Assembly (NCBI RefSeq): GCF_964204645.1
Contig: NC_134032.1
Span: 744,001 to 808,000, forward strand
DNA: 64,000 nt
Origin: Tubulanus polymorphus
Lineage: Eukaryota; Animalia; Nemertea
Direction of reading: 5' to 3'
The position numbers and the translations under genes were made by a program. Numbering within the stretch: position 1 is the first letter of the stretch; each line of letters opens with the position of its first letter. A model generated the notes under the pieces. That model was not told where the DNA came from. It saw only the letters and a program-made list of their open reading frames with translations, and made no database searches. Shown piece by piece: positions 5,082 through 39,559 of the stretch.

Positions 5082-8000
5082 TAGTAGAACGAGGACTGTA
5101 TCGACTCGCAGTGAGGTCGACGTCGTACACGGAGGAGGAACCGATGAGGAATACGAGGTCGTTACCATCGACGATCACAACACCAACAACAGTACGTATT
5201 GCGGTAACTCGCGCCCCTCGAGCAGATCCTCGCGTCCCTCGAGCAGATCCTCATGATCCCTACGACTCCTCAATTCCTTTTAGAAACCCTTTAGCGCAAA
5301 ATGCTTTTAAAACGTGCTTCAAAACTCATTCAATTTGGACAAAATACCCGAAACTCTGTTAAAACTCCTTCAATTTTGAGAAATAGGCAAATTGAGAATT
5401 AGAAATTTGTGTCTAGTTTTTAGTTGTAAATTAGACTACCCCTTAATCGGTGCAGTTAGGATTTGTTTTTATGCATTTAGGTAGCAATTAAGATTAGAAA
5501 CTGAGTTCATGTCGAGTTAAGGGGTCGTAATTTGCTTGTAAAACCACTGAATTAACCGTTTACCGAGATAAACAGTACTGATTTAGTCTACGCGAGGCAC
5601 TGAAAATATCCGAAATGCCCTTCTTTGAAAGACAGAAAATGTTGAAATGAATTTGAAAACTGTTCAAATGTCTTATCCGGCAAAATTTCCTGAGGATTTG
5701 CCTCAAAAGATTGTTTCCTCGGGATCATGAATGCTCTGTTTCGGATATTCAATTGTACGCGCATTGAGAATTTTCTGGAAATTTTTTGAAAGAATTGCCA
5801 TTTACTTTGGTAAGGCAGCAGTAAAAATTGGACCCTGGATCCACTTCTGTGTAATTGGGATATGAAAGTGATGCAGAGGCTTTCTTAAAGTTTGAAATTT
5901 TCTGCATGAAAACTCCTTACATCCAGGAATGACTGAATTGTGGGGAACTTAGGGTAATATCAGTCCGCCTAAACCATATATTTCTAATTGGTATCTTTAC
6001 GTAATACGTCTGCTTGTTATTGTTTTAGTTCACCACCAGGTGGCAGCACGAGAGCGTTACGAATCGCTGGGCTGCGAGTCGATCGACGTCACCGAGGACG
6101 AACAGGTCGACCCGACTCGCGAGGAAGAGGTCGTCAACTGCGTCTGTCTCGATAACTTTGAAAACGGTCTTATGATACAGGTAATTAAACACCAGGGGGC
6201 GCTTTGAAACGTTTAACCCCTGCTGGGTTTTCTGGAAACTAATCGTGTTTTTTTTTTCGTCAGTGTGAGTTGTGTTTATGTTGGCAACACGTGACCTGTT
6301 TGAGTCTCCCGGAAGATGCTCTGCCCAGTGAATATATCTGCATATTCTGCGTCAGTCCTAAAGGTATTTACAAATCCTAGGTTTCTTAAGACCGGGCTTT
6401 AGTTGTTAGATTGGTTATAGAACCAAAATGAGCTTAGACTGGTCTTAAGGTTGTTAGATTGGTTATAGAACCAAAATGAGCTTAGACTGGTCTTGAGTTG
6501 TTAGATTGATTATAGAAAATCAGCTTAGACTGGTCTTAAGTTGTTAGATTGGTTATAGAACCAAAATGAGCTTAGACTGGTCTTGAGTTGTTAGATTGAT
6601 TATAGAAAATCAGCTTAGACTGGTCTTCAGTAAACTGGTTTTAAGTTGACTGAATAGTTATAGAACCACAATGAGCTTAGACTGGTCTTAATAAGTTATT
6701 TAACTGAAATGACTTCATTCTGGTCTAAAATGTAAGTCCAGACTCAATTGATCGTTTGTTTTGTTCAGGTTTGCGTAAAAGTGCTACGTTCAGCTACGAT
6801 CAGGAATGGTTGAAAAACGGCGTTTTACCGAAATTCAAATTTCTGACGTCGGACGCGGTGAAAACCGATCACCAGACGGCGCTACTGAAAGGAACTAACA
6901 GTCTCATTGGTGATATTCACAATCTCAATAAAGTGCTGCGCGGCCTTCGTCAGAAAATTGCTCTTGCCAGGTAGGATATTGAAATGGGAATAAACAGAAT
7001 GGAGGGGTAGCTAGGCTTATCCTCTCTTGATGAGTTATTCGATGACATGATTGGGGGATTCATGAAGGCGACCATCTTTACTGGAAGCCTGTGTGAGGGT
7101 AACTTGATGATGTCATAAGGTGATTTATGGAGACAACCATCTTAAGAAGTTAATTCTAGATCTTAAAATGACGTCAAAGAGGATTTATATTTCTGGAAAG
7201 TTTTAGATCTTTAATTAAATGATGGATTTATGGAGGCAGCCATATTTCATAGAAAGCTTTAAATCTTTTAATGATGTCATAGATGGATTTATGGGGGCAG
7301 CCATATTTCATAGAAAGCTTTAAATCTTTAAATGATGTCATAGATGGATTTATGGAGGCAGACATACTTTCTGCAAAGTTCTTGATCTATAAATGATGTC
7401 ATAGGTGGATTTATAGAGGCAGACATATTTAATAGAAAGTCCTTGATCATTTGATGATGTCATAGGTGGATTTATTGAGGCAATCATCTCTTTGGTGAAG
7501 TGCTAAATCTTTATAATGAGATCATAGGGGGATTTTTGGAGGCAGCCATCTTAATGAAATATCGTTGAACTGTTGTCTATATTATTTTCAGTTGCGACGA
7601 TCATCCGGACTTGAAAATCTGGTCGAAACACTGGGAGGTCGAACAGGAAGTGCCGATTGACCAGGACGCCACGGCGAATAAAGACACTGAATCCACGGCG
7701 ACCGTCGACGAGGTCGCTAAAAATATCACCGAGTTCACCGATCTGTTACCAGAGGGCGCCGCCGTCGAAGATGAAGACGGTATCGATTTGTCGATGGACG
7801 TGGATTCGGTCGAGCAGACGGGCGTCAGAGTCGGGTTGAGTTTAGACAGCGGTTTAACGACGGCAAGCGCGCAGGAGATCGATCTCAGCGGACAGCTAGA
7901 TGCGTTTAGCTTTCCGACCGCTAGTCAAAATCAGTCGAATCTGGAGTCATCGGCAGGTCGAAATGAGTCAAATCAAGAGTCGTGTGCAGGTCAAAATGAG

Positions 8001-11000
8001 CAAAATCAAGAGTCGTCTACAGTTCATGAGTCGAATCTGGAGTCATCTACAGGTAAAACCGAGTCGAATCTGGAGTCATCTACAGGTCATAAGGAATCAA
8101 ATCTGGAGTCGTCTGCAGGTAAAATTGAGGTGAATTTGGAGTCATCTGCAGGTAAAAATGAGTCAAATCTAGGGTCATCTGCAGCTCATAATGAGTCGAA
8201 TCTGGAGTCATCTGCAGGGCAAAATGAGCCAAATCAAGAGTCATCTGCAGTTCAAAACGAGTCGAATCTGGAGTCATCTACAGGTCAAAACCAGTCAAAT
8301 CTGGAGTCGTCTACAGGTCAAAACCAGTCGAATCTGGAGTCGTCTACAGGTCAAAATGAGTCGAATCTGGAGTCGTCTACAGGTCAAAACCAGTCGAGCA
8401 CTGGCAATGAAAAAACTCTTGAAAATCTCGATGAGAATCGGGCTCCGACGCCCACCGTGATAGAAGAACCATCTTCTGAAGAACCGCGTAAAACCGAACC
8501 TGGAAATACAAACCACGAATCAGTGAACCCTGACGGTGATGAATTAGAGGAATCTATGATCGATGACGAGACAAGTTTTAAATTACGAATCGAGGAAACG
8601 GACGAAGAATCGAATTCAAGTTTGATGTTTCTCGATCGAAGTCGATCGTTCCAAACGAAAACACCGGTCGTCGACTCAATGCCGGTCGATGACTCAATGC
8701 CGGTCAATAACTCTCTACCCATCAAAGACTCTGTGCCGGCCGAAGACTCTGTGCCGGTCGATGACTCTCTGCTAGGTGAGGAGTCAATGCCGGCCGAAGA
8801 CTCTGTGCCAGTCGATGACTCTCTGCCGGTCAATGACTCTGTGCTAGGTGAGGAGTCAATGCCGGCCGAAGACTCTGTGCCAGTCGATGACTCTCTGCCG
8901 GTCAATGACTCTGTGCCAGTCGATGACTCTGTGCCAGTCGATGACTCTCTACCGGTCAATGACTCTGAGCCGGTCAATGACTCTCTGCTGGTCAATGATT
9001 CTCTGCCAGGTGAGGAGTCAATGCTGGTCGATGACAAACAGGAAGGGACCTGCCAACAAGAAGTGACCCCTGAACGGAATGTGACCAATACGTCTGATAA
9101 TATTGCTAACCTTGACCCGGTCGATACGCCCGCCATCGCCGACCTTGACCTGACCGAAACGTCTGCCGTCGATGACCCTGACCACGGTGATGTAAGCGAA
9201 AATAAAATGGATGAGGAGTCGACGAAGAACAAATTCAAATTGGAGGACTCCGATCGGTCTCCGGACAAAACTGACGTTGATACGAACGAAACCTCAGCGA
9301 AAAGTGAAGTCCGCAGTTGTGAACCGTGTTTTAGTGATTCGGATTTGATTACGAGTAAAAAAGATTCCGCTCGTTCGTTGGACAACGGTCTCGTAGATTC
9401 GGCGGAGCGATCAGAAACGATCGCCCGACCATCGCGGGGAGCAGACGACGATACTAATCAATCGTTAACCGATCACACGTACTTCCCTCCGACTTATAAA
9501 CATTCTCCGGCTCCGACTGGAGTCCGGCTTACTGGTAATAGTGTGTGGACACCGGTGAAGGTAAGCTATTATTATACCCGCAGTCCACCGTGACCACTGG
9601 TGGATCTAGCTTAGGTTTTGGAGGCTCGGCTGCGGAAGGGCACCTTTTTCATGGACAATTTTGAATTTTAGGGGCCTGAGTCAATTTGGGGCATCAAATC
9701 CTTCTGTGCACCCACAAAATATGATATTTTGACATTTTAATGAAGAATCATTCATTAAAAATAAGAAGTTTACCCATTTTCTATTATTCAAATCGGCCAC
9801 TCTAATTACTTCTATAACCAGAACTTGTAAAATAGAAGGGCACTTCTAAAATCATGAGTACTGCTCAAGCGTTAGTAGCCCTAGGCTGGATCTGTGCCTG
9901 GTGACAATATGGCTGCCGATATAAATCCCCCTTCAACGTCATCTAATTATGCATAAACGCGCGTGCAGAAAATGCCTGCCTCCATGAATCCCCCTATGAC
10001 ATCATCTAAATGCCACCAGTGATTTCGTGTACGGATACTTCTGAAGATGATGTGTCTACCTCTATTAATCTCCCTATGACATCATCAAATTGTCTACTAC
10101 TGATTTGATCTAATAGACACTCTTCAAAATATGACTGACTGTTATTTCATTGTCTTTGAAATAAGGATGTCTCTTAGAGACCTATCTAGAGAAGATGTCT
10201 GCCTCCATAAATCCTCCTATGATGTCATGAAATAATAGTCAGAGACTTCCTAATCAAAATGGCTGTCTACAATGGCTCCTCCGATGACATGATTCAATGG
10301 TGGCAGAAAATCGTTTTCTAGGTTTTAACATGAGGATAATTTGATGATGTCATAGGGTGAATTACAAATACTGAAATCATATTTACGTGTGTTAATCTCG
10401 TTGACAGGGATCGAATTTAGATGTGGTCGATGATGAGGTCGACGATGAACTGTTAGAGGACGGCGACGATGACAGTAACCTGGTGGAGATGATGCCGATC
10501 GGTCAGAACCCGACGGACGAATGCCGACAGAATCTGCTGTTACACATCATGTCGCTGCAAGATGAAATCGATAAACGACTCGATTTAATCGATGAACAAG
10601 TGACAGGTACAGAAAAATATCTCATTGATGAAACGCTCGTCCATGTTGTAAAGATAATATAAAATGCCCACTAAGAATAAAAAGAGTCTGAAATGTTTCC
10701 TTGAGCTAGTGTAGTTTATTCAACGTTTCCACTATATCCTAATAGTCATCTTCAGGAATACTGATGTTGTCCTCATTATAACCATTGATGAAACACTCTG
10801 AGTCCGTGTTGTAAAGATAATATAAAATCCCTGCACACTAAGAATAAAAAGAGTCTGAAATGTTTCCTTGAGCTAGTGTAGTTTATTCAACATTTCGACT
10901 ATATCCTAATAGTCATCTTCAGAAATACTGATGTTGTCCTCATTATAACCATTGATGAAACACTCTGAGTCCGTGTTGTAAAGATAATATAAAATCCCTG

Positions 11001-11502
11001 CAAACTAAGAATAAAAAGAGTCTGAAATGTTTCCTTGAGCTAGTGTAGTTTATTCAACGTTTCCACTATATCCTAATAGTCATCTTCAGGAATACTGATG
11101 TTGTCCTCATTATAACCATTGATGAAACACTCTGAGTCTGAGTTGTAAAGATAATATAAAATCCCTGCACACTAAGAATAAAAAGAGTCTGAAATGTTTC
11201 CTTGAGCTAGTGTAGTTTATTCAACGTTTCGACTATATCCTAATAGTCATCTTCAGGAATACTGATGTTGTCCTCATTATAACCATTGATGAAACACATC
11301 TCTAAGTCTTTGTGGGATTGTTTAAAGTATTGTATGATTTTCTAATTCAGGGTTGGAGGAAATCGAAGGCCCGTTCCCCGGAGCGTGTGAACCGACGAGC
11401 GATGATCAGGACGTGCTCGCCGATTTACCAGTCGTTAAGAAATCGTTTAAAACTCTACTACTCGACCTCGCGAAGGTCAGGAAGTTCGCCTCGATGCCTT
11501 GA
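518..11502 (+). CDS. PHF20: PHD finger protein 20-like (PHF20/PHF20L1/MBD-R2 family), 5'-truncated by the window. Exons: 518-605, 820-905, 1308-2424, 2919-3028, 3861-4338, 4985-5191, 6029-6180, 6264-6363, 6769-6970, 7592-9560, 10408-10606, 11351-11502
   Basis: Tudor motif [29 protein letters not shown]; C2H2 finger [26 protein letters not shown]; PHD finger [27 protein letters not shown]; post-[12 protein letters not shown] and [11 protein letters not shown]; C-terminal [39 protein letters not shown]. All introns GT-AG with compatible phases; the 5191 donor is the least certain. Confidence 0.9.
3353..3705. repeat. 24-bp tandem repeat (ATCACGCATAAATTAAATAGCTAG)
   Basis: About 14 near-identical units, intronic. 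Confidence 0.95.
5032..5079 (+). repeat. Coding CAA/CAG trinucleotide repeat (poly-Q, ~16 Gln) in PHF20-like exon
   Basis: In frame within exon 4985-5191. Confidence 0.85.
7060..7555. repeat. ~60-bp dispersed minisatellite family (TGATGATGTCATAGGGGGATTTATGGAGGCAGCCATC); also 9960-10360, 34460-35820, 36960-37635
   Basis: Recurrent core seen in four introns, both orientations. Confidence 0.9.
10623..11297 (-). ncRNA. 167-bp tandem array (4 units) carrying minimal type I hammerhead ribozyme motifs, antisense in last PHF20-like intron
   Basis: Reverse complement reads TATTC-CTGAAGA-T-GACTAT-taggat-ATAGTC-GAAAC-GTT-GAATA (intact in the unit near 11218-11262). Confidence 0.75.
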
Positions 11503-22879: not shown

Positions 22880-25800
22880 TTAATCGTATTTATTCACATA
22901 TTCCGAGTCCTCGGTCGGTAAAGGTTGGTAGACGGCGCCACCTACACCTTGTATCGTGTCGAGTCGACTCCTGTTGTGACGTTCGCGGTCCTCGTCGCTG
23001 TTCCAGTATTGAGTCTCTCCGCTGCCGAATATCACGTAGAATAAAGCCCCGAACGCGTAGATACCGGCCGCTATATAGAATACGATCTGCCATTGACCAC
23101 GAGTTTGCTGTGAATATATAAAACATAGAATTAGGTTCAATTTATAGCTCATAACCTGCGACCCGTCTGGCAATCTGCAGCCTGGAACCTGCACCCGTTC
23201 AGATTATCTGCAGCCTGTAACCTGCACCCCGTCTGACAATCTGCAGCCTGTAACCTGCACCCCGTCTGACAATCTGCAGCCTGTAACCTGCACCCCTTCA
23301 GACAATCTGCAGCCTGTAACCTGCACCCCTTCAGACAATCTGCAGCCTGGAACCTGCACCCCTTCAGGCATGTAACTTTGCAGTGCGAAGTTAGACGGTT
23401 GTGTAGGTTTCCACAGAAATGTGGCTTTAATTTGACTCTGACCCAGTTCTACAGTTGTGTGGGTTTAATTTAGCCCAATTCCACAGTAGTGTGGGTTTAA
23501 TTTGACTCTGGATCCAGTTCCACATTGCATTGATATCCCATATATCCCCGGAGCTAGTGTGGCCAGTTTGTTTACATCAGGTGACCAGCCAAGAGATAGT
23601 GTGCTTGAGGTCGCTGCATATATCAGATGACCAGCTGCAGCCAATCAGAAGCTAGGGTTAGGGTCAGTGGTCATGTGCTTGGGGCTATTTGCATATATCA
23701 CGTGACAAGCTCCAGCCAATCAGAAGCTAGGGTTAGGGTTAGTGGTCATGTGCTTGGGGCTATTTGCATATATCAGGTGACCAGCTCCAGCCAATCAGAA
23801 GCTAGGGTTAGGGTTAGTGGTCATGTGCTTGGGGCTATTTACATATATCAGGTGACCAGCTCCAGCCAATCAGAAGCTAGGGTTAGGGTTAGCTGTTTCT
23901 AGGTGGGAGGAGGTGTATGTTTACATACAGTGACATCAGTTCATTGACAGCTCCCCCTATAGTTAGTCAATTATACATCTACAATTGACTGTGAATTGAT
24001 TTTTACAGTTGTGTGTTATATTGACATAGAATACATTTCTGTAAGCATTATTACATCTGGCTATGGATTCAATTCTACAGTTGTATGAAGTCATTTCTAT
24101 AAAGATAACAATATCTGTTATAAGGCATTTAATAGATTGACTTGACTATTGGTTTGACTATGAATTTGAAATAAGAAGCGCGTTGATAAAGTATCAAATG
24201 TTTAAGGAGGAGGGGAGGGGGTGTTAACAGGCCGAGGAGGTACAAGATGCTGTCGGCAGGTAACACAATACTTACGTCATCATTAGTGAGTAACCCAACC
24301 ACGTACGGGCCGACCATCCCGGGTATAGTAGCAAAACTATTACTGATACCCATTAGCGTTCCTGTAAAACAAAATCATCGAATTCATTTCAAGCAACAAT
24401 CTTCATATTAGTTGTCGAATAAACACTATAATCCGTGTATACTGTAAATAAATGAAGAAATCCCACACTTCGAATTTAAAATCATATGATCAAATTTATT
24501 ATTATGAAACCACAACGTTTCGGCTGTTGACTAACATCATTCCACCTGATGATGGCTTCCACCTGATGATGGCTGTTAGTCAACAGCCGAAACGTTGTGG
24601 TTTCGTAATAATAAATTTCATCATATAATTTTAAATTCGAAGTGTGGGATTTCTTCATTAATCTTCATATTATCAATTAATTCCAATAAATATTATCTCA
24701 ATTCAACTTACCTCATTAGGCTTTTTAAAGTTATTCTTTTTCATTTGAGATATATTTTCTTTGATTTATATATTATTTTTCATTGAAATAATCGATGAAT
24801 TGTTTTTTTACACAATAGATAATTACGATATCTTTAATCTATTCGATCGCTATCTTAAATATGTTTCAATCCAGGGTTTGTAGCAGTCGGACTGAGTGAA
24901 AAGTGTCACAGCACTTTATCGGGAATCCAAAGAATCTAGACAATTTTCTAAATCTAGGCACAGTTGAATTCACACATTACGACAAAATAGACCGCGATAA
25001 AACTTGTCGCTATAAATTTCCTTTGATGACATCGGGTCCAAAATGTACAAGCACTTTTCAGCAGATTTTAGGGATATTACCTGAATGTTTAGCCCTAATC
25101 AGGGCCTCTCCTAATACATTGCAAAACGAAGCACTTTTCAGACTCAGTCGAATTAGCTACAAACCCCGTCAATCAGTTTTTATACATTAAAACGTAATTA
25201 AAACAGATAAATGATTGATTATGTTTTAGCATGCGAGGGAGTTGCAGTATATAGAAGCACGGTGAAGGAAAGACAAACAGTGAGTGTAACAACAGACAAA
25301 ACCTTCTATCATTTTCAATCCAAAACTCCCGGGTTCATTTCATATGTCTTTACCCTTTCGGTGTGGTGTATAAATCAGCGATTGCCTTTTGATGTAGTTA
25401 GGCATTAGTTTTCATCTCGATTGTTAGTCCCATTAAGTGCATCTACACCTCAGTGCAGTGTATAAATTGGTGATGGATTTTTCTAGTACACCGCATCGTG
25501 GTGTATTGATATAATTAGGAACTTTATAGCTAATGAGAGATGGCAGCACCTTAGTGAAACTTAGTGAAATATTCGTAACTAACGATACACCGCACCGCAG
25601 TGTAGACGCACTGTGGTATGCCCGTTATACACCGTACTAAAGTGGAATTTTTAGTAATTTTCAAATTATCTCCAGCACTTTCGGATTATAAATGTGTCCG
25701 CAGTGAAAGGGTTAGTAGTATTTGTTATAGTAGACTCTAACTCTCTGAGACCCCGAACTAAGATTGTCAATTCATAAAAATCTTTAGCAAGTTCACGGTA

Positions 25801-27249: not shown

Positions 27250-30200
27250 ATGGTATATATAGAGGACGCAGGTACCTGCAAACACCGCCGATATATCCAG
27301 ATGGTTTATTCCGACACCGGTCAAATTAGGACCGTTAAACCCGACAGCCAGCGTTAAAATCAAAACCGCCTCCTGGGCGTTGCATCTAACAAACGACAGT
27401 CCGACTAGACATACTGCCGGCAGTCCGAGTCCTACAAATAGTGCGTGAATGTACTAGATATTAGACACTTTTAATCACTCAAACTCCCTGAATTCAGTTC
27501 CACAGTTTTGAGTTCACTGGATCCTGAGTTCAGATTTAACTCTAACTCACAACTGTGGAACTGGATCCTGAGTTCAGAGGTAACTCTAACTCACAACTGT
27601 GGAACTGGATCCTGAGTTCAGATTTAACTCAAACTCACAACTGTGGAACTGGATCCTGAGTTCACAGTTAACTCTGACTCATAACTGTGGAACTCGATCC
27701 TGAGTTCAGAGTTAACACAAACTCACAACTGTGTAACTGGATCCTGAGTTCACAGTTAATTCTGACTCACAACTGTGGAACTAGATCATCCTGAGTTCGG
27801 AGTTAACTCATTAAGTAAAACTCACAACCGTGGAACTAGATGCCAGTCTCTACGAAACAGTTTTAGTTTTAACCCTGGTTTCCGAGAATGAAATCAGAAA
27901 ATTACTTTCGAAGCTGGTTTAAGGTAATCAGTGGCAGTCGGATGGCGCGCTGGATCCGCACCTGATACGGGCGCGTGGCATACAGGTACCGGCACCTGGC
28001 ACGCGGTTAAGTACCTGCGTAAACCGCCGCGATATCTAGATGATTGACCGCAGCTGATGCTATCGTGGCACTGTTCAAACTGACGGCGAGAGTTAAAACC
28101 AAAACTGCTTCCGTAGTGTTACATTTTACGAACGAAAGTCCGATCAGACAAAAAACAGGCAGTCCGAGTCCTACAAATAGTTAAATATGTTGTTATTGTT
28201 ATGGCGCCGGTTCAGCCCATGTAGCTTGACTCCGGGCCAGTACTAAACGTGGTTTACATGCGTCTATAAAGTAGGCATCGATCTGCAGCCTGGAGCCACC
28301 CCACCTCTTCAGCCTAGGAGCAAATATCCTTCCGCTTGAGCCTGGAGCCACCCCGTCCCTTCATTCATGATGGAGCTAAGCCTTCTCTTCAGTCCGGGAT
28401 CAATTATCGCTCCCCTTTAGCCTGGAGCTACCCCTTTCCCTTTAATCAACCTGGAGCCACCCCGCTTCAGTCTGGAAGCTCCATCCAATCTTAGTCTGGA
28501 GCCAACCCTCCACTTCAGCCTGGAAGCAGCTATCACTCTTCCGCGTGGAGCCAACCCACTTAAGTCTGGAAGCTCCATCTACCCTCTTAGCCTGGAGCCA
28601 ACCCTCCTCTTCAGCCTGGAAGCAACTATCACTCCTCCGCGTGGAGCCAACCAATCGGAAGAGTGGACATTGCGATTAGTGGTCATGTGCTCGGGGCTAT
28701 TTGCATATATCAGGTGACCACCTTCAGCCAATCAGAAGTTAGGTTTAGGGTTAGCTGTTCCTAGGAGGGATGATGTGTCTGTTTACGAACAGTGACTTCA
28801 AGATCAAGGTGGCTGATCGCGAAAAAATAATCATCTGCAAAAATGTGATTGTAATCTGAGTCGAAAAAATGAGACAAGAAGGTTGTGTCTGCTTTATAGA
28901 ATAGCTAAAGAGGTTATAGTGCGTTTCTAGTTCATGCTATACCTGCGAATACGGCTGATATGTCTAAATGATTGATACTATAACCGGCCATATTGAATCC
29001 GTTCAAACCGACGGCCAGGGTCAACACTAAAACGGCGTGCTGAGAATCGCATATGATAAACGACATCCCCACGAGACAGACGCCCGGCAGACCGAGCCCT
29101 GAAAAATTCAAATTGGTTTTTGAAACGGGAAGTTCCATTCCTGTGCTCGATTCGCAGGTTTGAAGACGAAATGGCCGATTAAAACAGTGTCCCTACAGAT
29201 CAGTCATAAATTTTTAATTTTTTTCTAATTTCAAGGAGAAAATTTCAAATCCTGAGGAAGCGTCTGCGTCACTTTCATATCTCAATTACAGAAGACTCGC
29301 TCCTAAATCAGTACAGTTTATCAGTAAACCATTACTTCAGTGGTTTTGTAAACAAATTTCATTCCACATACTTTCTAAACTCAGTTAGCCTAATAATTTT
29401 GTAACCGCCCAATTGGGTTATAACAAATCCAGGTCCCAATTGTACCGATTTAGGTGTAGTCAACTGTACATCTAAAAACTAGATAAAAAATTTCTAATTG
29501 CTTTTAAATTCTCAAAATTTAATGAGTTTTAAAGGAATTTCGTGCATTTCTTTTAAATCAAAGGAGTTTCAAGCTATCTTAAACCCCATCCGGTGTCACT
29601 TTATCCGTCGAATAATATATCCCTAAAAATTTTTGCGTGCATTTTCAATTTTGTGCCGGTTTCGAATTCGATTGAGATCGTAAAGATGTGCTTTAAAAAT
29701 CATACGAAAACGGGTACACACGTAAAGCTAAGCTTCGATCGGCCGGTTTTTATTCGGCTAGTCCGGCGGTCGTATACCTGCGAATACGGCCGAAACGTCT
29801 AAATGGTTTATACTATAACCGGCCATATTGAATCCGTTTAAACCGACGGCCAGAGTCAATACTAAAACGGCGTGCTGAGAATCGCATATAATAAACGACA
29901 TCCCCACGAGGCAGATGCCCGGCAGACCGAGCCCTGAAAAATTCAAATCGTTCGTAAAATTGCGGAAGTTCCGTTCGTACGCTTGATTCGCTGATTTGAA
30001 GACACGATTGCCGATTAAACCTTCACCGCCATCTGTCATTTTCCGCACCCTTCAATACCATTATAACTTTTCCATCCCTAACTAAGGCATCAACCACATA
30101 GAACAGGCAATAGGCTGATCAAAAGTAGGTAAGCGCCGATCATCATAACCATTGACACATTGTTATCACATTGATGGTGGATCTATAACTCCCTGTTTTA

Positions 30201-33200
30201 AGCAAATGTATTTTCCTATGACAATCAGGCATAGCCTGAAGTTCGGATGAAAAATTATATTCTGAGGCCCTTACCGATTACCTAAACCCGTTCCCGAGCC
30301 AGAGAAAAAAAGGCAACAAATTTCCAGAGCGATGGTTCCCACAGTTACGTGAATTAAAAATTCCCAAGTTTTTCATGGGTGATTTTTCAGTTTTTCCAAA
30401 TGGAAATGAACGCGTACCAGTCATGCTACAGTCAATATTTCAGTGGTGACTGGGTGATAAAGGTGATCTCAAGGGAAATCTCTGAAGAAAATGACAAATG
30501 AAATGTAAAATGTAGATGAATTTCCCAAATATTTCCCAGATTAGGGGAACATTTTTCAAATTCCCAAATATTTCCAAACTGGGAATCATTATTTCAAAAT
30601 TCCCAAGTTTGTCCCCAATTTTTCCTGTTCTGCGGGAACCATGCATAGCTTTTCCGACGGCCTGGATAAAATTCCCATTTTCCAAAACTTCCGCTAGAAC
30701 CCGCGAGTCTTTTGGACGAATCTGTCGCTGCAACGACCGAAAGATTCTCGATATTGTCCGCGAAGGTTTCGACAATCGAATTCGATTTCGTAAAGACGTG
30801 CTTTAAAAATCGTACGAAAATGGGTACACGCGTAAAGCTAAGCTTCGGTCGGTCGGTTTTCAAGCTCGTGTATATGAATAGCCATAAAAGCGATAACACT
30901 AAAAACCTCATTTTCTAATGAGTAAATACTGTTAATTAACACGATCCGTTTTCGGGATCATATCCCCTCATCGGGTGAAATACAAGTGAATCAAATGATT
31001 AAACTACAGGGCTGGGTTTCATAGATGTGGAAGAAAGATAGTCCCTTGGAACATTTTGAAATTTGTCAGTTATTACCATAGTTTCTCATTGTTACTATGG
31101 TGGTTGTCATCCAGATTGACGATTTACCCCTAGGGATAACTTTAATACTCAGTCTATGAAACCGGGCCCAGGTTTATATACAACATACAGTTACAAAATT
31201 ACAAGTGCTAAATTCTAAGCTAATAACAAACCAAGTATTTAATTACAAGCTAATTATTTGAATACATTTAGGATAAAGGATGAGCCGTTTTGGAATAATT
31301 GTTGATTTAAAGAGGGTCGTTGCGCTTTAATAAAAATAAATTTAAATAAATAAATTTTTTAGTGTTAACGCTTCTATGGTTATTCAGATACTCGAACTCT
31401 CTTCCTAAGATCGTGTAGTGTACCTGCGTAGACCGCCGAGATGTCTAAATGGTTTATGCTATAACCGGCCATGATAAATCCGTTCAAACCGACGGCCGCC
31501 GATAAAACTATAACCGCCTGCTCAGAACCGCATACTATAAACGACATCCCTATAAGACACCCGGCGGCCAAATCTTGGCCTGAAAAAATTCAAGTCAGTC
31601 GAAATCAGCGTAATCACCACCTGCGGTACTTAGCCGTTGACGCTGAAATTTTTAGATTACCGCCGCCATTTTGGTTCAACAAAAAAAAAAAAACATTTAA
31701 ATACTTATACGAGATGGGGGGAAACACTTAAAATAGAAAACACCATGACAGATACTGAAAAAGATTAAAAACTGCAGCGGCCGGTTTCACAAAGCTTAAT
31801 TAACCTTTAATTATGATTAAACCACTAATCATGATTAAATTATCACAATTAAATAAAGTTATGTGTTTCACAAAATGTAATTATCTTAAATTATGATTAA
31901 GTTAAGTTCCTCTAGAGTGTCAATTAAATCGTATAATCGTTATTAACTAATCACGCTTAAGGAAATTTAATTATGATTTAGGTCCTAATTTTGATTAAAG
32001 TTGATTATGCTTTGCGAAACCGGCCCCCGAGGGATGTATCCAGTACTGGGAACTGTGGATCTAGGCCACATGGCTTGTAGCAGTACGGCTAGAGTGCAAA
32101 ACTGAGCACTTTTCTGCACTTACAGCGCGGAAAAAGTAGTGTCAACTTTAAGACTAGTCTTAAGACCTTAGACTTAACACCATCCTATTTCTATAGCTTA
32201 TCTAACAACTTAAGTTCAGTCCCAAGATTTAAGACCACTTTTGGTACTAAGTCTCGACTATGGAATTGACCTCAGGGGCCGGTTCCTCAGTTGAGACTTA
32301 AGTCCAAAAATGGTCTTAAATTTTAAGACTGGTCGTTAGATTGGCTATAGAACTAAGATGGTCTTAAATTGGTCTTAAGCCTAAGCCATGAATATGAAAC
32401 TGGGCCCAGGGGTCGGTTCCATAGTCATGACTTAGACTTAAGACCAGTCTAAGACCAACTTAGTTCTACATCCAATCTATCAACTTAAAACCAGTCTTAA
32501 GATTTAAGACAACTTTCGAACTTAAGTCACAACTGTGCAACCAGTCCAGTTGCAAAGTCGTGACTTAAGTCCAATAGTGGTCGTAAATCTTAAGACTGGT
32601 CTTAAGTTGTTAGATTGGCTACAGAACCAAAATGAGCTTAGACTGGTCTTAAGTTGTTAGATTGGTTATAGAACCATAATGAGCTTAGACTGGTCTTAAG
32701 TTGTTAGATTGGCTATAGAACCAAAATGAGTTTAGACTGGTCTTAAGTTGTTAGATTGGTTGTAGAACCATAATGAGCTTAGACTGGTCTTAAGTTGTTA
32801 GATTGGCTATAGAACCAAAATGAGTTTAGACTGGTCTTAAGTTGTTAGATTGGTTGTAGAACCATAATGAGCTTAGACTGGTCTTAAGTTGTTAGATTGG
32901 CTATAGAACCAAAATGAGTTTAGACTGGTCTTTAGTTGTTAGATTGGCTATAGAACCAAAATGAGTTTAGACTGGTTTTAAGTTGTTAGATTGGTTGTAG
33001 AACCATAATGAGCTTAGACTGGTCTTTAGTTGTTAGATTGGCTATAGAACTAAGTTGGTCTTAGACTGGTCTTAAGTTGTTAGATTGGTTATAGAACCAA
33101 AATGAGCTTAGACTGGTCTTAAGTTGTTAGATTGGTTATAGAACCAAAATGAGTTTAGACTGGTTTTAAGTTGTTAGATTGGTTATAGAACCAAAATGAG

Positions 33201-36200
33201 TTTAGACTGGTTTTAAGTTGTTAGATTGGTTATAGAACCAAAATGAGTTTAGACTGGTCTTAAGTTGTTAGATTGGTTATAGAACCAAAATGAGTTTAGA
33301 CTGGTTTTAAGTTGTTAGATTGGTTATAGAACCAAAATGAGCTTAGACTGGTCTTAAGTTGTTAGATTGGTTATAGAACTAAGTTGGTCTTAGACAGGTC
33401 TTAATTCTAAGCCATGACTATGCAACCGGTCCCTGGGGCCTTACCAAAAACGTAGCACTAGAGATAGACTCACTACAAGCCATGTAAAACACAACATCGA
33501 TGACACAAACATTCAGCGAATCCAAACGAACAAATCCTCTCCGTTTTCAATCATACCCGCGAAAACAGGCGAAAGGTCAAGGTGATTCACCATATACCCG
33601 ACCATCGCGAAGCCGTTCAACGCGACGTTCAAAACGACGAACACTAGCGCCACCTGTTGATCGCACGGGATATACCCGACCGCGATGAGGAACACGACCG
33701 GCAGGGTCAGACCTAACGTCGAATATATATCAGACAGTTATTAATATCGATGAATTCATGATCGCGAAAAACAGGGTTTGTAGTTTGTCAGACGCTTTCA
33801 CTAAAGTATCTAGGCTTCTCCGAAGGAGATGAATGTGAAATTGTAATCGGGCATCTATTTTGAAAACGACAGATTTGGCAACGTGAGGGGTGCAAGTATA
33901 ACATTAGTGGGGTTCGGGTGGTCCTCCAAACGAAATACAGGGGCTTAACTGGCCTTCATCAGGGTCTATTTTTTTGAAAATTTCATCTGGTCAAAAAGAA
34001 ATTGCAGACTTTTTGGAGAGCGCTTTTGAATTTATGACGGCCCCCGTTAAAGTAATCAGAAATGGCCGCCTATTTCAAGTTTGTCCAAAAGTATCACTTT
34101 TTCGGGAAAGTATCGACGTACCACAAACCCTGCCTTTTTCTTTTTGACGTATCATTTTAGACTGGATTTAAAGGTGGTTGTAGAATTCACCTGAAATATT
34201 TCTAGTATTGGTAATAAACATTTTCAACAATTACGATATTTCAAATTGTTTCTACTCCTCTGATTCAGAATGCTGCGTAAATTCGATGAATTTGAACACT
34301 TACCTAAAGTGTTGAATATTTTGCGTACTGTAGTCGTCGATAAGATGCCTTTAAATCGTAAATAATCGGCGATTTGTCCGGAACAAATCGCCAACACCCA
34401 GAACACTAAATACGGTACAGCCGATAGAAAACTATTCTGAAAATATACACGACATAACACGCTGTCATAGGGGGATTTATGCGGGTAGCCATCGTTTCTA
34501 GATCTGTGATGATGTCATAGGGGGATTTATAGAGGTAGCCATCGTTTCTAGATGATTCTAGATCTGTGATGATGTCATAGGGGGATTTATGGAGGTAGCC
34601 ATCGTTTCTAGATAGTTCTAGATTTGGGATGATGTCATAGGGGGATTTATGGAGGTAGCCATCGTTTCTAGATGATTCTAGATTTGTGATGATGTCATAA
34701 GGGGATTTATTATAGAGGTAGCCATCATTTCTTGATAGTTCTAGATCTGTGATGATGTCATAGGGGGATTTATGGAGGTAGCCATCATTTCTAGATAGTT
34801 CTAGATCTGTGATGATGTCATAGGGGGATTTATGGAGGTAGCCATCATTTCTAGATAGTTCTAGATCTGTGATGATGTCATAAGGGGATTTATAGAGGTA
34901 GCCATCGTTTCTAGATAGTTGTAGATCTGTGATGATGTCATAAGGGGATTTATTATAGAGGTAGCCATCATTTCTTGATAGTTCTAGATCTGTGATGATG
35001 TCATAGGGGGATTTATGGAGGTAGCCATCATTTCTAGATAGTTCTAGATCTGTGATGATGTCATAGGGGGATTTATAGAGGTAGCCATCGTTTCTAGATA
35101 GTTGTAGATCTGTGATGATGTCATAAGGGGATTTATTATAGAGGTAGCCATCATTTCTAGATAGTTGTAGATCTGTGATGATGTCATAGGGGGATTTATA
35201 GAGGTAGCCATCGTTTCTAGATAGTTGTAGATCTGTGATGATGTCATAAGGGGATTTATTATAGAGGTAGCCATCATTTCTTGATAGTTCTAGATCTGTG
35301 ATGATGTCATAGGGGGATTTATGGAGGTAGCCATCATTTCTAGATAGTTGTAGATCTGTGATGATGTCATAGGGGGATTTATTATAGAGGTAGCCATCAT
35401 TTCTAGATAGTTGTAGATCTGTGATGATGTCATAGGGGGATTATAGAGGTAGCCATCGTTTCTAGATAGTTCTAGATCTGTGATGATGTCATAAGGGGGT
35501 TTATGGAGGCCGCCATCAGTTCTGTTAATCACAAGTAGGCAAGCGGTACTGATAAATTGATGTCATAGGGAGATGTGCGAGTGCAGACATTTTTTCTTTC
35601 TGGAAGTGCGTAGAGGTTACTAGATGATGTCATAGGGGGATTTATGGAAGCAGAAATCTCTACTGTAAAGTTGTAGATCTTCATAATGATGTAGTAGGGC
35701 GATCTATGGAGGCAACCATCTTTTTTGTAGAGTTCCTTAAATGATGTCATTAGGGGGATTTTTGAAGGCAACCATCATTTTCAGAACGTATACGGGAGGT
35801 ATTTGATGATGTCATAGGGGGATAGATACTGACCTTTTTGATATCGAAATGAAGCACCTCTTTCATGTAGGTCGGGAGACAAGTCAACAGCGTATAAAAT
35901 CCCCAGTTGTTGCACATGTGCGTGACCAGTATCGCGTAATTCGGCATCGATTTGAATATATCCTTCCACGGTGGATGAGTGTACTGTGGAAATGAAAATA
36001 GATTTCAATATATCCTTCCACAGTGGATGAGTGTACTGTGGAGACAAAAATAAATTTCAATATATCCTTCCACAGTGGATGAGTATACTGTGGAAACAAA
36101 AATAGATTTCAATATATCCTTCCATGGTGGATGAGATTTAAAATCAATCTAATTTCTAGAAAAAATTCTTTAAATCAATCTTATTTCATTTTATTCAATT

Positions 36201-39200
36201 GATATCAATCGAAGATGAATTGAGAATTTTAAAAATTCCACGCCGGATGTTGAAAAGTAGGCATACCACGTAAGTGTGTCTACACCGCAGTGCGATGTAT
36301 CGTTAGTTACTAATATTTGACTGTTTGAGACAGGTGCTTCGTGCATCTTTCATTAGAGAAAAAAACTGATTACTAATTACATCGATAAACCACAATGCGG
36401 TGTACTAGCAACGTCCATGACCGATTTATACACCGCACTGCGGTGTAGACACACTGAACCATATTGATTCCCCTAAACTATCTAAACCTAACTGTAAGGT
36501 GCCGTATATTTATGCAATGCATCACTGATTATATACACCGCACTGCAGTGTAGACACACTGAACCCAAACTATCTAAACCTGTGTGGTGCCATATACTTA
36601 TACAGTGCATCACCGATTTACACACCGCACTGTGGTGTAGATAGACACAGTGCAAGGGTTTGAAATGGTTGAGGTATTCGACTGAAGGCGCCATCAATTG
36701 TTTTACCTTTTTTCCGTCGATGTGTCCCAGCGTCGATTCGATGTAGTGCTTCTCTTCGGCGGTGATAGTAGGGTGGCTCGCGGGGGTATCGTGTATCAGA
36801 ATGAACCACACGAGACACCATACGCAGCTGACTGACCCGAAAATATAGAACACGGACGGCCAGCCTCCGTCGAACCCGTATTGACATAGTAAACCGGATA
36901 GAGGCATCGACACTACCGTACCCATATGAGCTCCTACAAATAAACAAAACTTACAGCTACGCTTGATGATGTCATAGGGAGATTTATAGAGGCAGACATC
37001 TTTTCTACATTTCTAGAAGTGTCTATAGATAGACAATTTGATGATGTCATAGAGAGATAAATGGAGGCAGACATCTTTTCTAGAAGTTTCCATAGATCAA
37101 ATCACTAGAAGACAATTTGATGATGTCATAGGGGGATTTACGGAGGCAGACATCTTTTCTGGAAGTGTTTACAGATCGAATCAATTTCAGAAAATCTGAT
37201 GATGTCATAGGGAGATTAATGGAGGCAGACATCTTTTCTAGAAGGGTTTACTGATCAAATCAATTTGAGAAAATCTGATGATGTCATAGGGAGATTAATG
37301 GAGGCAGACATCTTTTACAGGAGTGTCTATAGATCAAATCACTAGTAGACAATTTCATGATGTCATAGGGGGATTTATGGAGGCAGACATCTTTCTACAA
37401 ATACAAACTCATACACTTGATGATGTCTTAGGGGGATTTATGGAGGAAGACATCTTTTCTAGAAGTGTTTACACAAATCGTTAGAAATTACATTAGAGAT
37501 TATCGCGAGGCGGACATCTTTTTTATTCGAAACGTCTTGATGTCATAGGGGGATTCAATCGGAGCAATTACGGAATATCTTTTTGCGATTATGAATTTTG
37601 CGACATCATAGGGGGATCTACGGAAGCGGCCATCTTGTTCTGCTTCGTACTTACCGGAATACGTAATACTGCCTAGTTTACTTCTCTCTAAAGGTGGCGC
37701 CCATCGACCCCAAATCGCGTGCATCGCCGGGAATGTAACCCCCTGAAAAATGATAAAATTACTTTAAAACACGAACAGTTCAGGAAGGTCATAAATCGTT
37801 CCTAAAATTTTTTTTAGATTTTGAGATTTCGATATTTTTAAAAATATTTCTACCTCGCCAATGCCTTCCAGGATGCGCACGACGACTAGGAGTATCCAGC
37901 TAGTCCTAGCGGCGATCGGGGTGACTAGCGTCAACACGCTAGTGCACAGTACGCCGGCACCGAACGGTATTTTACCGCCGTACTTTTCGGCGATCCAACC
38001 GCCGGGAATCTGAGTGAGTATGTACCCGTAGAAAAACGAGCCCAATATGATGCCCTGCATCTCGGGCGTCCAGTTGAACTCTCCTTGCTGCAAAACAAAA
38101 ATCAACCCTAATTAATGCCCTAAAGTGCTGGAGATCGAATCCGAATCTAAAAAATTCAATCCCAATCGTTTGTCTAACGGGTATAACGCTTAAGTGCGTC
38201 TTCACCGTGGTGCCGCGTAACGTCAGTTACTTATATTAATCTGCGTATCGCGGTGCTGCCACCTTTTGATAGATATAAACAAACTGATAACTATTTACAT
38301 ATCAATACACGGTGACGCGATGCATTAGCTAGCGATGCGGTGTAAATCACTGATTCATACACCGCACTGAAAGGATTAATTGATAATGAAGACATTTTGT
38401 AATGTATTATTGGAGATAACTATTGAATAACCATACTTAGATTGATTTGAATAGTATTCCGAACATTTGATAGTAGTTCTGATTATTTGATAATAACTAT
38501 CAAATAATCAGAACTACTCAGAATCAGAATTGCTAACCATCAGAAACTATTGCTAACTATCAGAAACTAATGCTAACTATCAGAAACTATTGCTAACTAT
38601 CAGAAACTAATGCTAACTTTCAGAAACTATTGCAAACTATCAGAATCAGAATTGCTAACCATCAGAAACTATTGCTAACTATCAGAAACTAATGCTAACT
38701 TTCAGAAACTATTGCTAACTATCAGAAACTATTGCTAACTATCAGAAACTATTGCAAACTATCAGAAATTATTGCTAACTATCAGAAACGATTGCTAACT
38801 ATCAGAAACTATTGCTAACTATCAGAAACTATTGCAAACCACGCGAGGCCCTTGTCAGAACCTGTTTAAACAGATTTTGGAAACGTTTTGACAATCGGTC
38901 GTAGAATAAAGGATTAGTTACCGTTGTAGGGGGCGCCGGCGTAGTCGTATTATCGGTTATCTCGTGAGGACATTCGCTGGTCTCGTTGGCGTGCGACTCG
39001 GCTGTTAGATTGACCATCGCGACGAGCGCCACGCTCAAATTCACCCGCAAACAATAAACGAAGAAAAACCCGAGAAATGACATCCCGCACAGAATGTGAC
39101 GCTTCAAAATAGACGGACATCCTGGAAAAATTGACAGCAGGTGATATTACATGCCAATTGGCTAATTGACCCATGTGCACTGAGGTGCACCACTTAGAAA

Positions 39201-39559
39201 ATTCAAGGAAAGTGTCCCTGCTGCACAGTTGAGTCCCTGAGAAAACAGTTGGATAGAGCGGGACTCGAACCCGGGCCAGCAAATTACTAGCGTAACGTCT
39301 TCCCACTAGACCACCGAGGTCCAACCGTAACGTTAAAAGCATAGACGGATCAACGATTCTATAGAGGGGCGTACACATCCAAATCCGTCTGGGCGATTGA
39401 TATGAGAAGATCAATAAACGGAGATAGAGTCTTTGAGAAGGTGTTACCTTTACGACTTTGAGCTGGTTTCACTAGAAAGCTTTCATCGTCCTCATCAGAA
39501 TTGATGCTGACAGGCGATTCAGCTCCATATGGATTGTAATCCGCCATTTTGACTGTCAT
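22880..39559 (-). CDS. SLC17A5: Sialin-like SLC17 MFS anion transporter. Constitutive exons: 39448-39559, 38922-39121, 37854-38087, 37655-37742, 36707-36933, 35834-35983, 34304-34436, [variable exon x6], 24276-24361, 22880-23107
   Basis: SLC17 motifs [131 protein letters not shown]; N-terminal acidic DDESFLV and C-terminal YQPL sorting-type motifs; all introns GT-AG in phase. Orthology to SLC17A5 vs other SLC17 members not proven. Confidence 0.92.
23150..23365. repeat. 33-bp tandem repeat (CTGCAGCCTGTAACCTGCACCCC..GACAAT)
   Basis: About 6 units, intronic. Confidence 0.9.
23600..23940. repeat. 75-bp tandem repeat containing CCAAT, GGGTTAGGGTTAG and ATTTGCAT; single copy at 28675-28800
   Basis: About 4 units spaced 75 bp (23641, 23716, 23791, 23866). 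Confidence 0.9.
24451..24660 (+). ncRNA. Penelope-like inverted-repeat unit with minimal hammerhead core at 24559-24600 (antisense in SLC17 intron)
   Basis: CCAC-CTGATGA-T-GGCTGTT-agtc-AACAGCC-GAAAC-GTT-GTGG: stem I 4 bp, stem II 7 bp, palindromic AACGTT stem III. Confidence 0.75.
27153..27246. repeat. (TA)n microsatellite
   Basis: Direct. Confidence 0.99.
27276..27431 (-). CDS. SLC17 variable exon 8f ([53 protein letters not shown])
   Basis: 156 nt, atttgtag| ... |gtacct, open frame. Confidence 0.88.
28015..28170 (-). CDS. SLC17 variable exon 8e ([53 protein letters not shown])
   Basis: 156 nt, atttgtag| ... |gtactt, open frame; not in the ORF track, translated by hand. Confidence 0.88.
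28943..29098 (-). CDS. SLC17 variable exon 8d ([53 protein letters not shown])
   Basis: 156 nt, tttttcag| ... |gtatag, open frame. Confidence 0.9.
29778..29933 (-). CDS. SLC17 variable exon 8c ([53 protein letters not shown])
   Basis: 156 nt, tttttcag| ... |gtatac, open frame. Confidence 0.9.
31010..31168. mobile_element. PIF/Harbinger (Tourist)-like MITE, TIR GGC(T/C)(G/C)GGTTTCATAGA, flanked by CAG; relatives at 31778-32028, 52204-52331
   Basis: 16-bp near-perfect TIRs with 3-bp CAG direct flanks. Confidence 0.65.
31424..31579 (-). CDS. SLC17 variable exon 8b ([53 protein letters not shown])
   Basis: 156 nt, ttttttcag| ... |gtacac, open frame. Confidence 0.9.
33557..33712 (-). CDS. SLC17 variable exon 8a ([53 protein letters not shown])
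   Basis: 156 nt, tag| ... |gtatga, phase 1-1, open frame. Confidence 0.9.
38510..38840. repeat. 20-bp tandem repeat (ATCAGAAACTATTGCTAACT)
   Basis: Direct. Confidence 0.95.
39150..39319 (-). mobile_element. tRNA-derived SINE fragment in SLC17 intron 1
   Basis: Minus strand A box TGGTCTAGTGG and B box GGTTCGAGTCC at tRNA spacing; no clean cloverleaf. Confidence 0.6.

Follow-up and report, generated by a model that had tools for sequence, protein, structure and literature searches.

A six-copy tandem array of homologous exons covering transmembrane helix 10 in a sialin-like transporter gene of the nemertean Tubulanus polymorphus

We analyzed a stretch of 64,000 nucleotides (nt) from the genome of the palaeonemertean Tubulanus polymorphus (NC_134032.1, positions 744,001 to 808,000; hereinafter, the window), which contains, on the minus strand, a gene annotated in RefSeq as "sialin-like". 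When RefSeq isoform X1 was aligned exactly, with splicing, to the window, ten coding exons were obtained (Table 1), and the eighth of these is present as six homologous exons in tandem, which we denote c1 (the 5′-most copy) to c6. An original prediction made from the DNA sequence alone had posited such an array within a transporter gene of the SLC17 (sialin) family, with particular bases joining the constitutive flanks to the copies. These junctions proved exact: exon 7 (34304-34436) ends at base 34304, and exon 9 (24276-24361) begins at base 24361. The six copies are the only coding exons in the interval between the two.

Each of the six exons is exactly 156 nt long, is preceded by AG and followed by GT, and is open in a single frame that leaves two nucleotides at the 5′ end and one at the 3′ end (phase 1-1), so that the predicted set of equal-length exons without stop codons stands in full. 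The split codons at both ends of the exon encode glycine with all six copies, and the C...NHLD motif is retained throughout along with the length, the frame, and the splice sites. Pairwise DNA identity among the copies is 50-76%, except for c3 and c4 (93%), and amino-acid identity ranges from 37 to 96%. When the six peptides were compared to the 64-kb window with tblastn, only the six sites were recovered, and the remaining matches were noise, so no seventh copy was found. In a six-frame search of the entire assembly (268 Mb, 77 contigs), the six copies map to contig C8, and elsewhere there are only lone, weaker matches; a search with the full-length protein showed that these belong to complete paralogous genes arranged in tandem gene arrays, without further exon arrays.

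The copies bear the hallmarks of coding constraint. Between c3 and c4, 11 of the 156 nucleotides differ but only 2 of the 51 residues (I>V and V>I), as originally noticed, and the ratio of nonsynonymous to synonymous divergence (dN/dS), estimated by the Nei-Gojobori method, is 0.06 for this pair. For the other pairs with estimable synonymous divergence (dS), dN/dS is 0.08-0.41; the c1-c5 and c1-c6 pairs are too saturated. The proposed purifying selection is thus borne out in all pairs that could be estimated. Because dS mostly exceeds 1 whereas dN/dS is low, the copies are both old and constrained. In phylogenetic trees, the six copies group together, with a Shimodaira-Hasegawa-like approximate likelihood ratio test (SH-aLRT) support of 85-86; c1 is the sister of c2-c6 (SH-aLRT 95-97), and c5 groups with c6. 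Derived states at positions 15 and 49 of the encoded cassette are common to all six copies.

Searching 1.8 billion representative protein sequences with one exon, without a profile, retrieved full-length SLC17 proteins, the best of which is a gastropod sialin-like protein (P0045). When P0045 was used as the query, it led to "sialin-like isoform X5 [Tubulanus polymorphus]", with a 98% match to the exons in the window, including the non-exon ends of the open frames. The corresponding 90% cluster consists of five RefSeq proteins, isoforms X1 to X5 (XP_074656222, 223, 225, 226, and 227), each 533 amino acids long. These proteins are identical except for residues 379-429, where each contains one copy verbatim, namely, c2, c3, c6, c4, and c5, respectively. 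Searches with the whole isoforms returned only this five-member cluster, and proteins of other species are no closer than about 58% identity. As modelled for five copies, the pattern is that expected of mutually exclusive splicing, and the NCBI pipeline normally builds alternative variants only with transcript support. In the protein collection, where transcript-derived proteins of this species are absent, no protein with two copies or with none was found, which is weak evidence. The proposal of mutually exclusive splicing is therefore upheld for c2-c6 in the RefSeq models, one copy each, but not for c1, which is in no model; likewise, of the up to six transporters thought to be made from one locus, five are modelled.

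We compared this arrangement with the isoform sets of ten other invertebrate sialin-like clusters, and an equal-length swap of this exon was not found in any of them: the isoforms differ in length or derive from paralogs, so these candidates for similar swaps were rejected. Proteins that are matched twice by the exon were considered as candidate exon arrays as well, but are fused tandem genes or, in Lingula, the product of a near-identical duplication of multiple exons.

The assignment to the SLC17/sialin type of the major facilitator superfamily (MFS) is supported. The Pfam domain MFS_1 is found on individual exons, and, in a phmmer search of the sequences in PDB, human sialin ranks first (E 2.7e-145), ahead of VGLUT2/3 (VGLUT2, about 1e-120) and the Escherichia coli transporter DgoT (about 1e-22). 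An AlphaFold2 model of isoform X1, built with 80 homologs (mean predicted local distance difference test score 88, predicted template modelling score 0.88), contains 12 membrane helices, including transmembrane helix (TM) 9 at residues 367-389 and TM10 at residues 396-415 and 417-424. In this model, the exon covers the end of TM9 and the whole of TM10, in agreement with the predicted TM9-TM10 segment. Residues 379-429 align without gaps to residues 372-422 of human sialin, that is, the segment with the GFSINHLD motif, as proposed, and the TM10 core strings quoted in the original prediction are correct on the alignment of the copies. TM10 breaks at Gly416, the equivalent of sialin Gly409.

This segment includes residues that, in characterized relatives, touch the substrate. 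Human sialin contacts bound N-acetylaspartylglutamate through Ser411 and His414, and docked sialic acid contacts His298, Tyr301, and Ser411, alanine at each of which lowers transport (PMC11116495). Ser411 has also been listed among the putative pocket residues, and Gly409 forms the TM10 kink, with G409E being pathogenic (PMC9858498). In DgoT, Ser370 and Trp373 of TM10 contact the substrate, and TM10 serves as a hinge in alternating access (PMC6532931). In the alignment of the Tubulanus copies, the position of His414 is H in c1-c6, whereas the Ser411 position is M in c1, S in c2, c3, and c4, A in c5, and G in c6. Across the family, the Ser411 position is variable as well (N 47%, M 14%, Q 11%). 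The Gly409 position is G in c1, c2, c3, c4, and c6 but S in c5, where both this hinge glycine (99% Gly in the family) and Gly404 are replaced by serine.

The constant part of the protein keeps the equivalents of sialin Tyr54, Arg57, Tyr119, Arg168, His298, Asn302, Phe305, Tyr306, and Asn430. When the ten sialic-acid pocket residues of sialin were scored (Tyr54, Arg57, Tyr119, His298, Tyr301, Asn302, Phe305, Tyr306, Ser411, and Asn430), 8 of the 10 were conserved in the constant part; Tyr301 is replaced by Asn, which is likewise the consensus residue in the alignment of invertebrate homologs, and Ser411 is kept only in c2-c4. This pattern fits a transporter of the SLC17A5 clade; given the replacement of Tyr301 and the partial retention of Ser411, it does not establish sialic acid as the substrate. 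With five of the copies used singly in the RefSeq models, the gene probably makes a small family of transporters differing at a substrate-contact residue.

The DNA sequence places constraints on how a single copy could be chosen. The introns between the copies are 583-1977 nt long, so steric hindrance between adjacent splice sites is inapplicable; all sites are of the GT-AG type, and there are no U12-type donor motifs. As 156 is divisible by 3, the reading frame survives double inclusion as well as skipping, so that nonsense-mediated decay (NMD) is unable to enforce exclusivity; since NMD cannot remove such products, the choice between copies must be made at the splicing step. The donors of all six copies have the non-consensus form gtaY, with a pyrimidine at +4; this position is a purine in all eight constitutive donors and in 6 of the 7 distinct orthologous exons that are single-copy or the last copy.

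In arthropod clusters of mutually exclusive exons, a docking site and selector sequences pair in competition. We scanned the first and last introns against the 400-nt flanks of the copies for ungapped 16-nt pairing, with G-U pairs allowed and shuffled introns as controls; the best score was no better than in the shuffles (0.35-0.62 of the shuffles scored as high as or higher than the observed sequence), a weak test that covers ungapped, short-range pairing only. Thus, the postulated Dscam-type cluster holds as to its architecture of tandem, equal-length exons but not as to docking/selector pairing, which is not above chance. A scan of docking windows with RNAduplex was discarded as non-specific because G-rich windows pair with anything. 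No motif common to the flanking introns was detected beyond what the recency of c3 and c4 explains, and in Rfam searches of the introns, nothing scored above the threshold, with no ribozymes and only sub-threshold microRNA-like hairpin hits.

The inverted repeats in the region were considered as exon-associated pairs and rejected: they are a 47-nt satellite, a TA microsatellite, and a hairpin element, and the microRNA-like Rfam hits in the c1-c2 intron are hairpins of the same satellite. This satellite forms 17 copies, including an inverted block, at 32189-33440 in the c1-c2 intron, and its k-mer depth, up to thousands of times that of single-copy sequence, identifies it as a genome-wide repeat. 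The hairpin element (24443-24667) has 94-nt arms that are 94% complementary, is situated within the cluster's last intron, 80-300 nt upstream of the exon 9 acceptor, and resembles miniature inverted-repeat transposable elements.

The six-copy tandem exon cluster in this SLC17A5-type MFS gene is genuine, and, taken together, these observations make it likely, in our judgment, that one copy is used per mRNA. Under this interpretation, each mature mRNA would take its copy by mutually exclusive splicing. The 52-residue cassette encodes the C-terminal half of TM9, all of TM10 including the hinge glycine, and the loop leading to TM11. Elsewhere, the substrate pocket (TM1, 2, 4, 7, and 11) is constant, and TM10 contributes one invariant position (the His414 equivalent) and one copy-dependent position (the Ser411 equivalent), along with neighbouring residues of the helix. 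The likely outcome would be a set of transporters with a common fold whose substrate preference, TM10 hinge step in alternating access, or both differ from isoform to isoform, with the copy chosen per cell type via splice-site selection.

Several points weigh against this interpretation. The case for the use of one copy at a time rests on automated RefSeq models, and c1 is in none of the five isoforms; the polypyrimidine tract of c1 is, furthermore, poorer than those at the constitutive acceptors. Given the frame-preserving length, tandem inclusion or skipping would escape NMD, and, within the limits of the scan described above, no pairing architecture stands out. Finally, the case for functional divergence, and with it for the differing substrate or ion selectivity hypothesised in the original prediction, is built on a single mapped contact residue and on the literature about a human protein that is 50% identical.

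The most serious alternative, which we rate somewhat below even odds, is that all isoforms carry the same substrates and differ instead in kinetics, pH or voltage coupling, stability, contacts with lipids or partners, or trafficking, with the cassette tuning the TM10 hinge and a lipid-facing TM9. Much of the variation between the copies indeed falls in the TM9 half (cassette positions 1-16), and TM9 is a peripheral helix in the MFS architecture. The loss in c5 of the near-invariant hinge glycine along with Gly404 and the role of TM10 as the gating hinge in DgoT, as well as its movement in sialin, point in the same direction. Nevertheless, the pocket residue equivalent to Ser411 varies among the copies, and replacement of this serine by alanine alters transport by human sialin; the variability of this position across the family is also what would be expected of a specificity determinant.

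A second alternative concerns c1, which could be an ancestral relic exon that is no longer spliced in and has been superseded by its downstream duplicates, so that only five copies are live. Apart from the missing isoform, no c1-containing protein is present in the collection, although a query with the c1 open frame recovered not even the genomic ORF and so carries no weight, and the acceptor context of c1 (…attcgacgttag) has a polypyrimidine tract that is less continuous than those of c2-c4 (tttttcag) and of the constitutive exons. Nevertheless, c1 is intact, with the length, the frame, AG/GT, and both glycine split codons preserved despite saturated synonymous divergence from other copies, and, given this saturation, c1 was clearly under constraint for most of its history. 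Compared with a profile of 122 distinct homologous segments, c1 scores the highest of the six (70.3 bits vs 54-69), and long neutral decay would have erased such a score; c1 also retains the family-typical Gly, Tyr, and Pro at cassette positions 12, 13, and 48, which are jointly lost in c2-c6. Moreover, the 5′-most copy in the ortholog from Lineus longissimus (see below) is likewise unannotated, and yet its score exceeds the family median, which leaves a missing gene model with little weight as an argument against use. We accordingly regard the relic scenario as unlikely and c1 as a probable live exon, one that, by its sequence features, is probably used but unsampled.

Another possibility is that the copies are not strictly exclusive and that transcripts with two copies or with none are common. 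Such transcripts would keep the frame, given an exon length divisible by 3 (156 nt) and two introns in phase 1, and so would escape NMD surveillance, and the complementarity scan revealed no RNA pairing by which exclusivity could be enforced. All five RefSeq isoforms, however, have the same length and a single copy each. Proteins of the MFS have a 6+6 fold: two copies would add a pair of helices to the C-terminal domain, and zero copies would delete TM10, either of which would break the fold. Purifying selection would not be expected to act so strongly on all copies unless each of them worked in a normal 12-TM protein. Frequent departures from the one-copy rule thus appear improbable, and the exclusive use of the copies at the RNA level remains the interpretation that we favour.

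The integrity of the assembly was assessed using four DNA-like sequencing runs from two samples of one study, with unitigs examined over 27800-33750, which includes c1-c5, with c6 outside. These unitigs are all genomic, and spliced joints are absent from them. The unitigs join each of c1-c5 to its own unique flanks at about single-copy depth, and k-mers common to c3 and c4 occur at roughly double that depth. Hence, although c3 and c4 are 93% identical and short-read unitigs break within both, an array created by collapsed or expanded haplotypes or by a mis-joined repeat, a possibility that the original prediction had raised, is very unlikely, to the point of being negligible, considering the low DNA identity among the other copies, the distinct flanks of c1-c5 at single-copy depth in both samples, and the separate use of c3 and c4 by the RefSeq models.

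The same reads reveal variation within the array. In c4, a C>T change at codon 40 (position 28978), at about half depth in one DNA run, corresponds to a heterozygous Ser>Asn replacement at the pocket position equivalent to Ser411, where Asn is the commonest residue in the family. The other three exonic variants between the samples (28154, 29908, and 31434) are synonymous.

We next consider the exon in other animals. Using the exon peptides and segments from the family as queries, we searched nine genomic loci of orthologs or paralogs from other species. The exon retains its 156 nt and phase 1-1 in Lineus, Lingula, Paralvinella, Pinctada, Physella, and Liolophura, and in Owenia, it is 159 nt long; the Glandiceps locus yielded one match, with no exon of 150-162 nt with AG/GT bounds recovered. 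Among the loci examined, a second divergent tandem copy is present only in the ortholog from Lineus longissimus, and six other sampled orthologs are single-copy. The two Lineus copies, both with the size and phase of the Tubulanus exons (Table 1), share 63% DNA identity. The 5′ copy scores 96 bits out of sample, compared with the family median of 86.5, and has the donor gtat, like c1. By these sequence measures, the 5′ copy is certainly constrained, and the two Lineus exons are a probable mutually exclusive pair that has gone unrecognised. Approximately unbiased (AU) tests on 51 columns (p 0.45-0.50) rejected neither of two histories: a first duplication common to both species, in which c1 pairs with the 5′ copy of Lineus (p 0.45), and separate duplications in each.

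Just upstream of the real exon, the Lineus locus also contains partial, degenerate versions of it (L015:5021-5113), which are probably decayed fragments of duplicates. In Lingula anatina (LFEI02000468.1, locus L017), matches at 6483-6638 and 10920-11075 belong to a near-identical duplication of multiple exons at the C-terminal end, with one residue differing in the TM9-TM10 exon. This locus was rejected as an exon array, given that several exons, not one, are duplicated near-identically; it represents a segmental duplication or else an artefact of the assembly, and the 692-residue "sialin" model (P0155) that reads through it is wrong.

A broader scenario can be drawn from the two nemerteans, although we consider it rather doubtful in its entirety. 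Nemerteans might have evolved a multi-copy exclusive cluster (two copies in Lineus, six in Tubulanus) that preserves the frame, is hence NMD-independent, and swaps TM10, the hinge helix in contact with the substrate, with the resulting transporters having truly different specificities for organic anions and the 5′ copy being reserved for a restricted cell type; exclusivity would then be achieved by a means other than docking/selector pairing, steric hindrance, spliceosome incompatibility, or NMD.

Table 1. Coding exons of the Tubulanus polymorphus sialin-like gene, the six alternative copies of exon 8, and the duplicated exon of the Lineus longissimus ortholog. Coordinates of the Tubulanus features are positions in the window.
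Feature	Coordinates	Strand	Remarks
Coding exon 1	39448..39547	-	Start codon at 39547; X1 mapping
Coding exon 2 (TM1)	38922..39121	-	X1 mapping; open frame seen
Coding exon 3	37854..38087	-	X1 mapping; Pfam MFS_1 E 1.2e-13 on the surrounding open frame
Coding exon 4	37655..37742	-	X1 mapping
Coding exon 5	36707..36933	-	X1 mapping; Pfam MFS_1 E 2.4e-9
Coding exon 6 (TM7)	35834..35983	-	X1 mapping; equivalents of sialin His298, Asn302, Phe305, and Tyr306 by alignment
Coding exon 7, constitutive	34304..34436	-	Strong donor gtaagt; joins to one variable copy
Variable exon copy c1	33557..33712	-	5′-most and most family-like copy (best score, 70.3 bits, with the family hidden Markov model); no RefSeq isoform
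Variable exon copy c2	31424..31579	-	RefSeq isoform X1
Variable exon copy c3	29778..29933	-	RefSeq isoform X2
Variable exon copy c4	28943..29098	-	RefSeq isoform X4
Variable exon copy c5	28015..28170	-	RefSeq isoform X5; most divergent copy, kink Gly replaced by Ser
Variable exon copy c6	27276..27431	-	RefSeq isoform X3
Coding exon 9, constitutive (TM11)	24276..24361	-	X1 mapping
Coding exon 10 (TM12 and C-terminal tail)	22880..23107	-	Stop codon; X1 mapping
Lineus longissimus ortholog (P0214, GCA_910592395.2 OU343010.1)	L015:8493-8648 (5′, unannotated) and 9015-9170 (annotated)		Both 156 nt, phase 1-1, AG/GT

Other repeats are scattered over the Tubulanus gene. A 52-nt tandem repeat (3.6 copies, 35949-36135) overlaps the acceptor of coding exon 6 along with the first 35 nt of that exon and yields two decoy starts of it with acceptor-like sites (tblastn matches at 36055-36090 and 35997-36038). 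The intron between exons 6 and 7 contains a 60-nt minisatellite (17 copies, 34496-35523), and the open frame of 344 codons found there on the gene strand is this repeat and is non-coding; related 79-nt repeats are located at 36963-37394. Elsewhere in the genome, there are several tandem arrays of complete SLC17 paralogs, at C2:24.772-24.805 Mb (about ten genes), C1:6.42-6.44 Mb, C8:11.18-11.20 Mb, and C7:1.66-1.67 Mb; thus, the family has expanded by gene duplication in addition to exon duplication.

The array amounts to a natural mutagenesis series, in which the SLC17 pocket is held constant while TM10 is exchanged six ways, including the Ser411-equivalent position, and one copy, c5, alters the hinge glycine whose G409E mutation causes sialic acid storage disease. 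Such isoforms, side by side, bear on how TM10 sets substrate choice and gating in SLC17. For splicing biology, the cluster is of interest in that it cannot rely on NMD and shows no obvious docking/selector system; outside arthropods, to our knowledge, mutually exclusive exons rarely form clusters of five or more. Full-text searches of the literature turned up no report of such a cluster, either for an SLC17 gene or for Tubulanus. The claim that no SLC17 array of this size had been described accordingly holds for the searched literature, but the five isoforms already exist as automated RefSeq models. The interest is further tempered by the fact that the event class is well known in transporters and that the function is deduced from sequence.

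The closest solved relative, human sialin (SLC17A5; PDB 8DWI, 8U3D-H, and 9AYB), shares about 50% identity over 470 residues with the Tubulanus protein, the 12-TM MFS fold, and the nine residues that are conserved in the constant part together with His414, and the boundary of the 156-nt phase 1-1 exon is common to orthologs of several phyla. The Tubulanus protein differs from it in having Asn at Tyr301 and a six-way alternative exon that supplies the Ser411 position, and the name "sialin-like" reflects automated annotation rather than a known substrate. The Lineus longissimus ortholog has the same exon in a tandem duplicate, albeit with two copies compared to six in Tubulanus. The mutually exclusive exon clusters of arthropods, such as Dscam1 exons 4, 6, and 9, the ABCC/MRP exon cluster, and 14-3-3 zeta, also consist of many homologous tandem exons, one of which is chosen per mRNA; unlike these, the cluster described here, in a nemertean host, has introns with no docking/selector signal in a simple complementarity scan and no conserved intron element.

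The event as such falls within a well-known class, that of exons duplicated in tandem and spliced in a mutually exclusive manner. Its closest functional analogue, as we take it, is exon 4 A/B/F of SLC12A1 (NKCC2), a transporter gene with tandem-duplicated, equal-length, mutually exclusive exons. The SLC12A1 cassettes encode a membrane helix of the translocation pathway, and the isoforms differ in ion affinity. Unlike the nemertean gene, SLC12A1 encodes a protein of the APC/LeuT-type rather than the MFS fold, has three copies rather than six, and is a vertebrate gene. Mutually exclusive events of this kind, including the three exons of SLC12A1, recur convergently in ion-transporter families of vertebrates, arthropods, and nematodes (PMC9741552).

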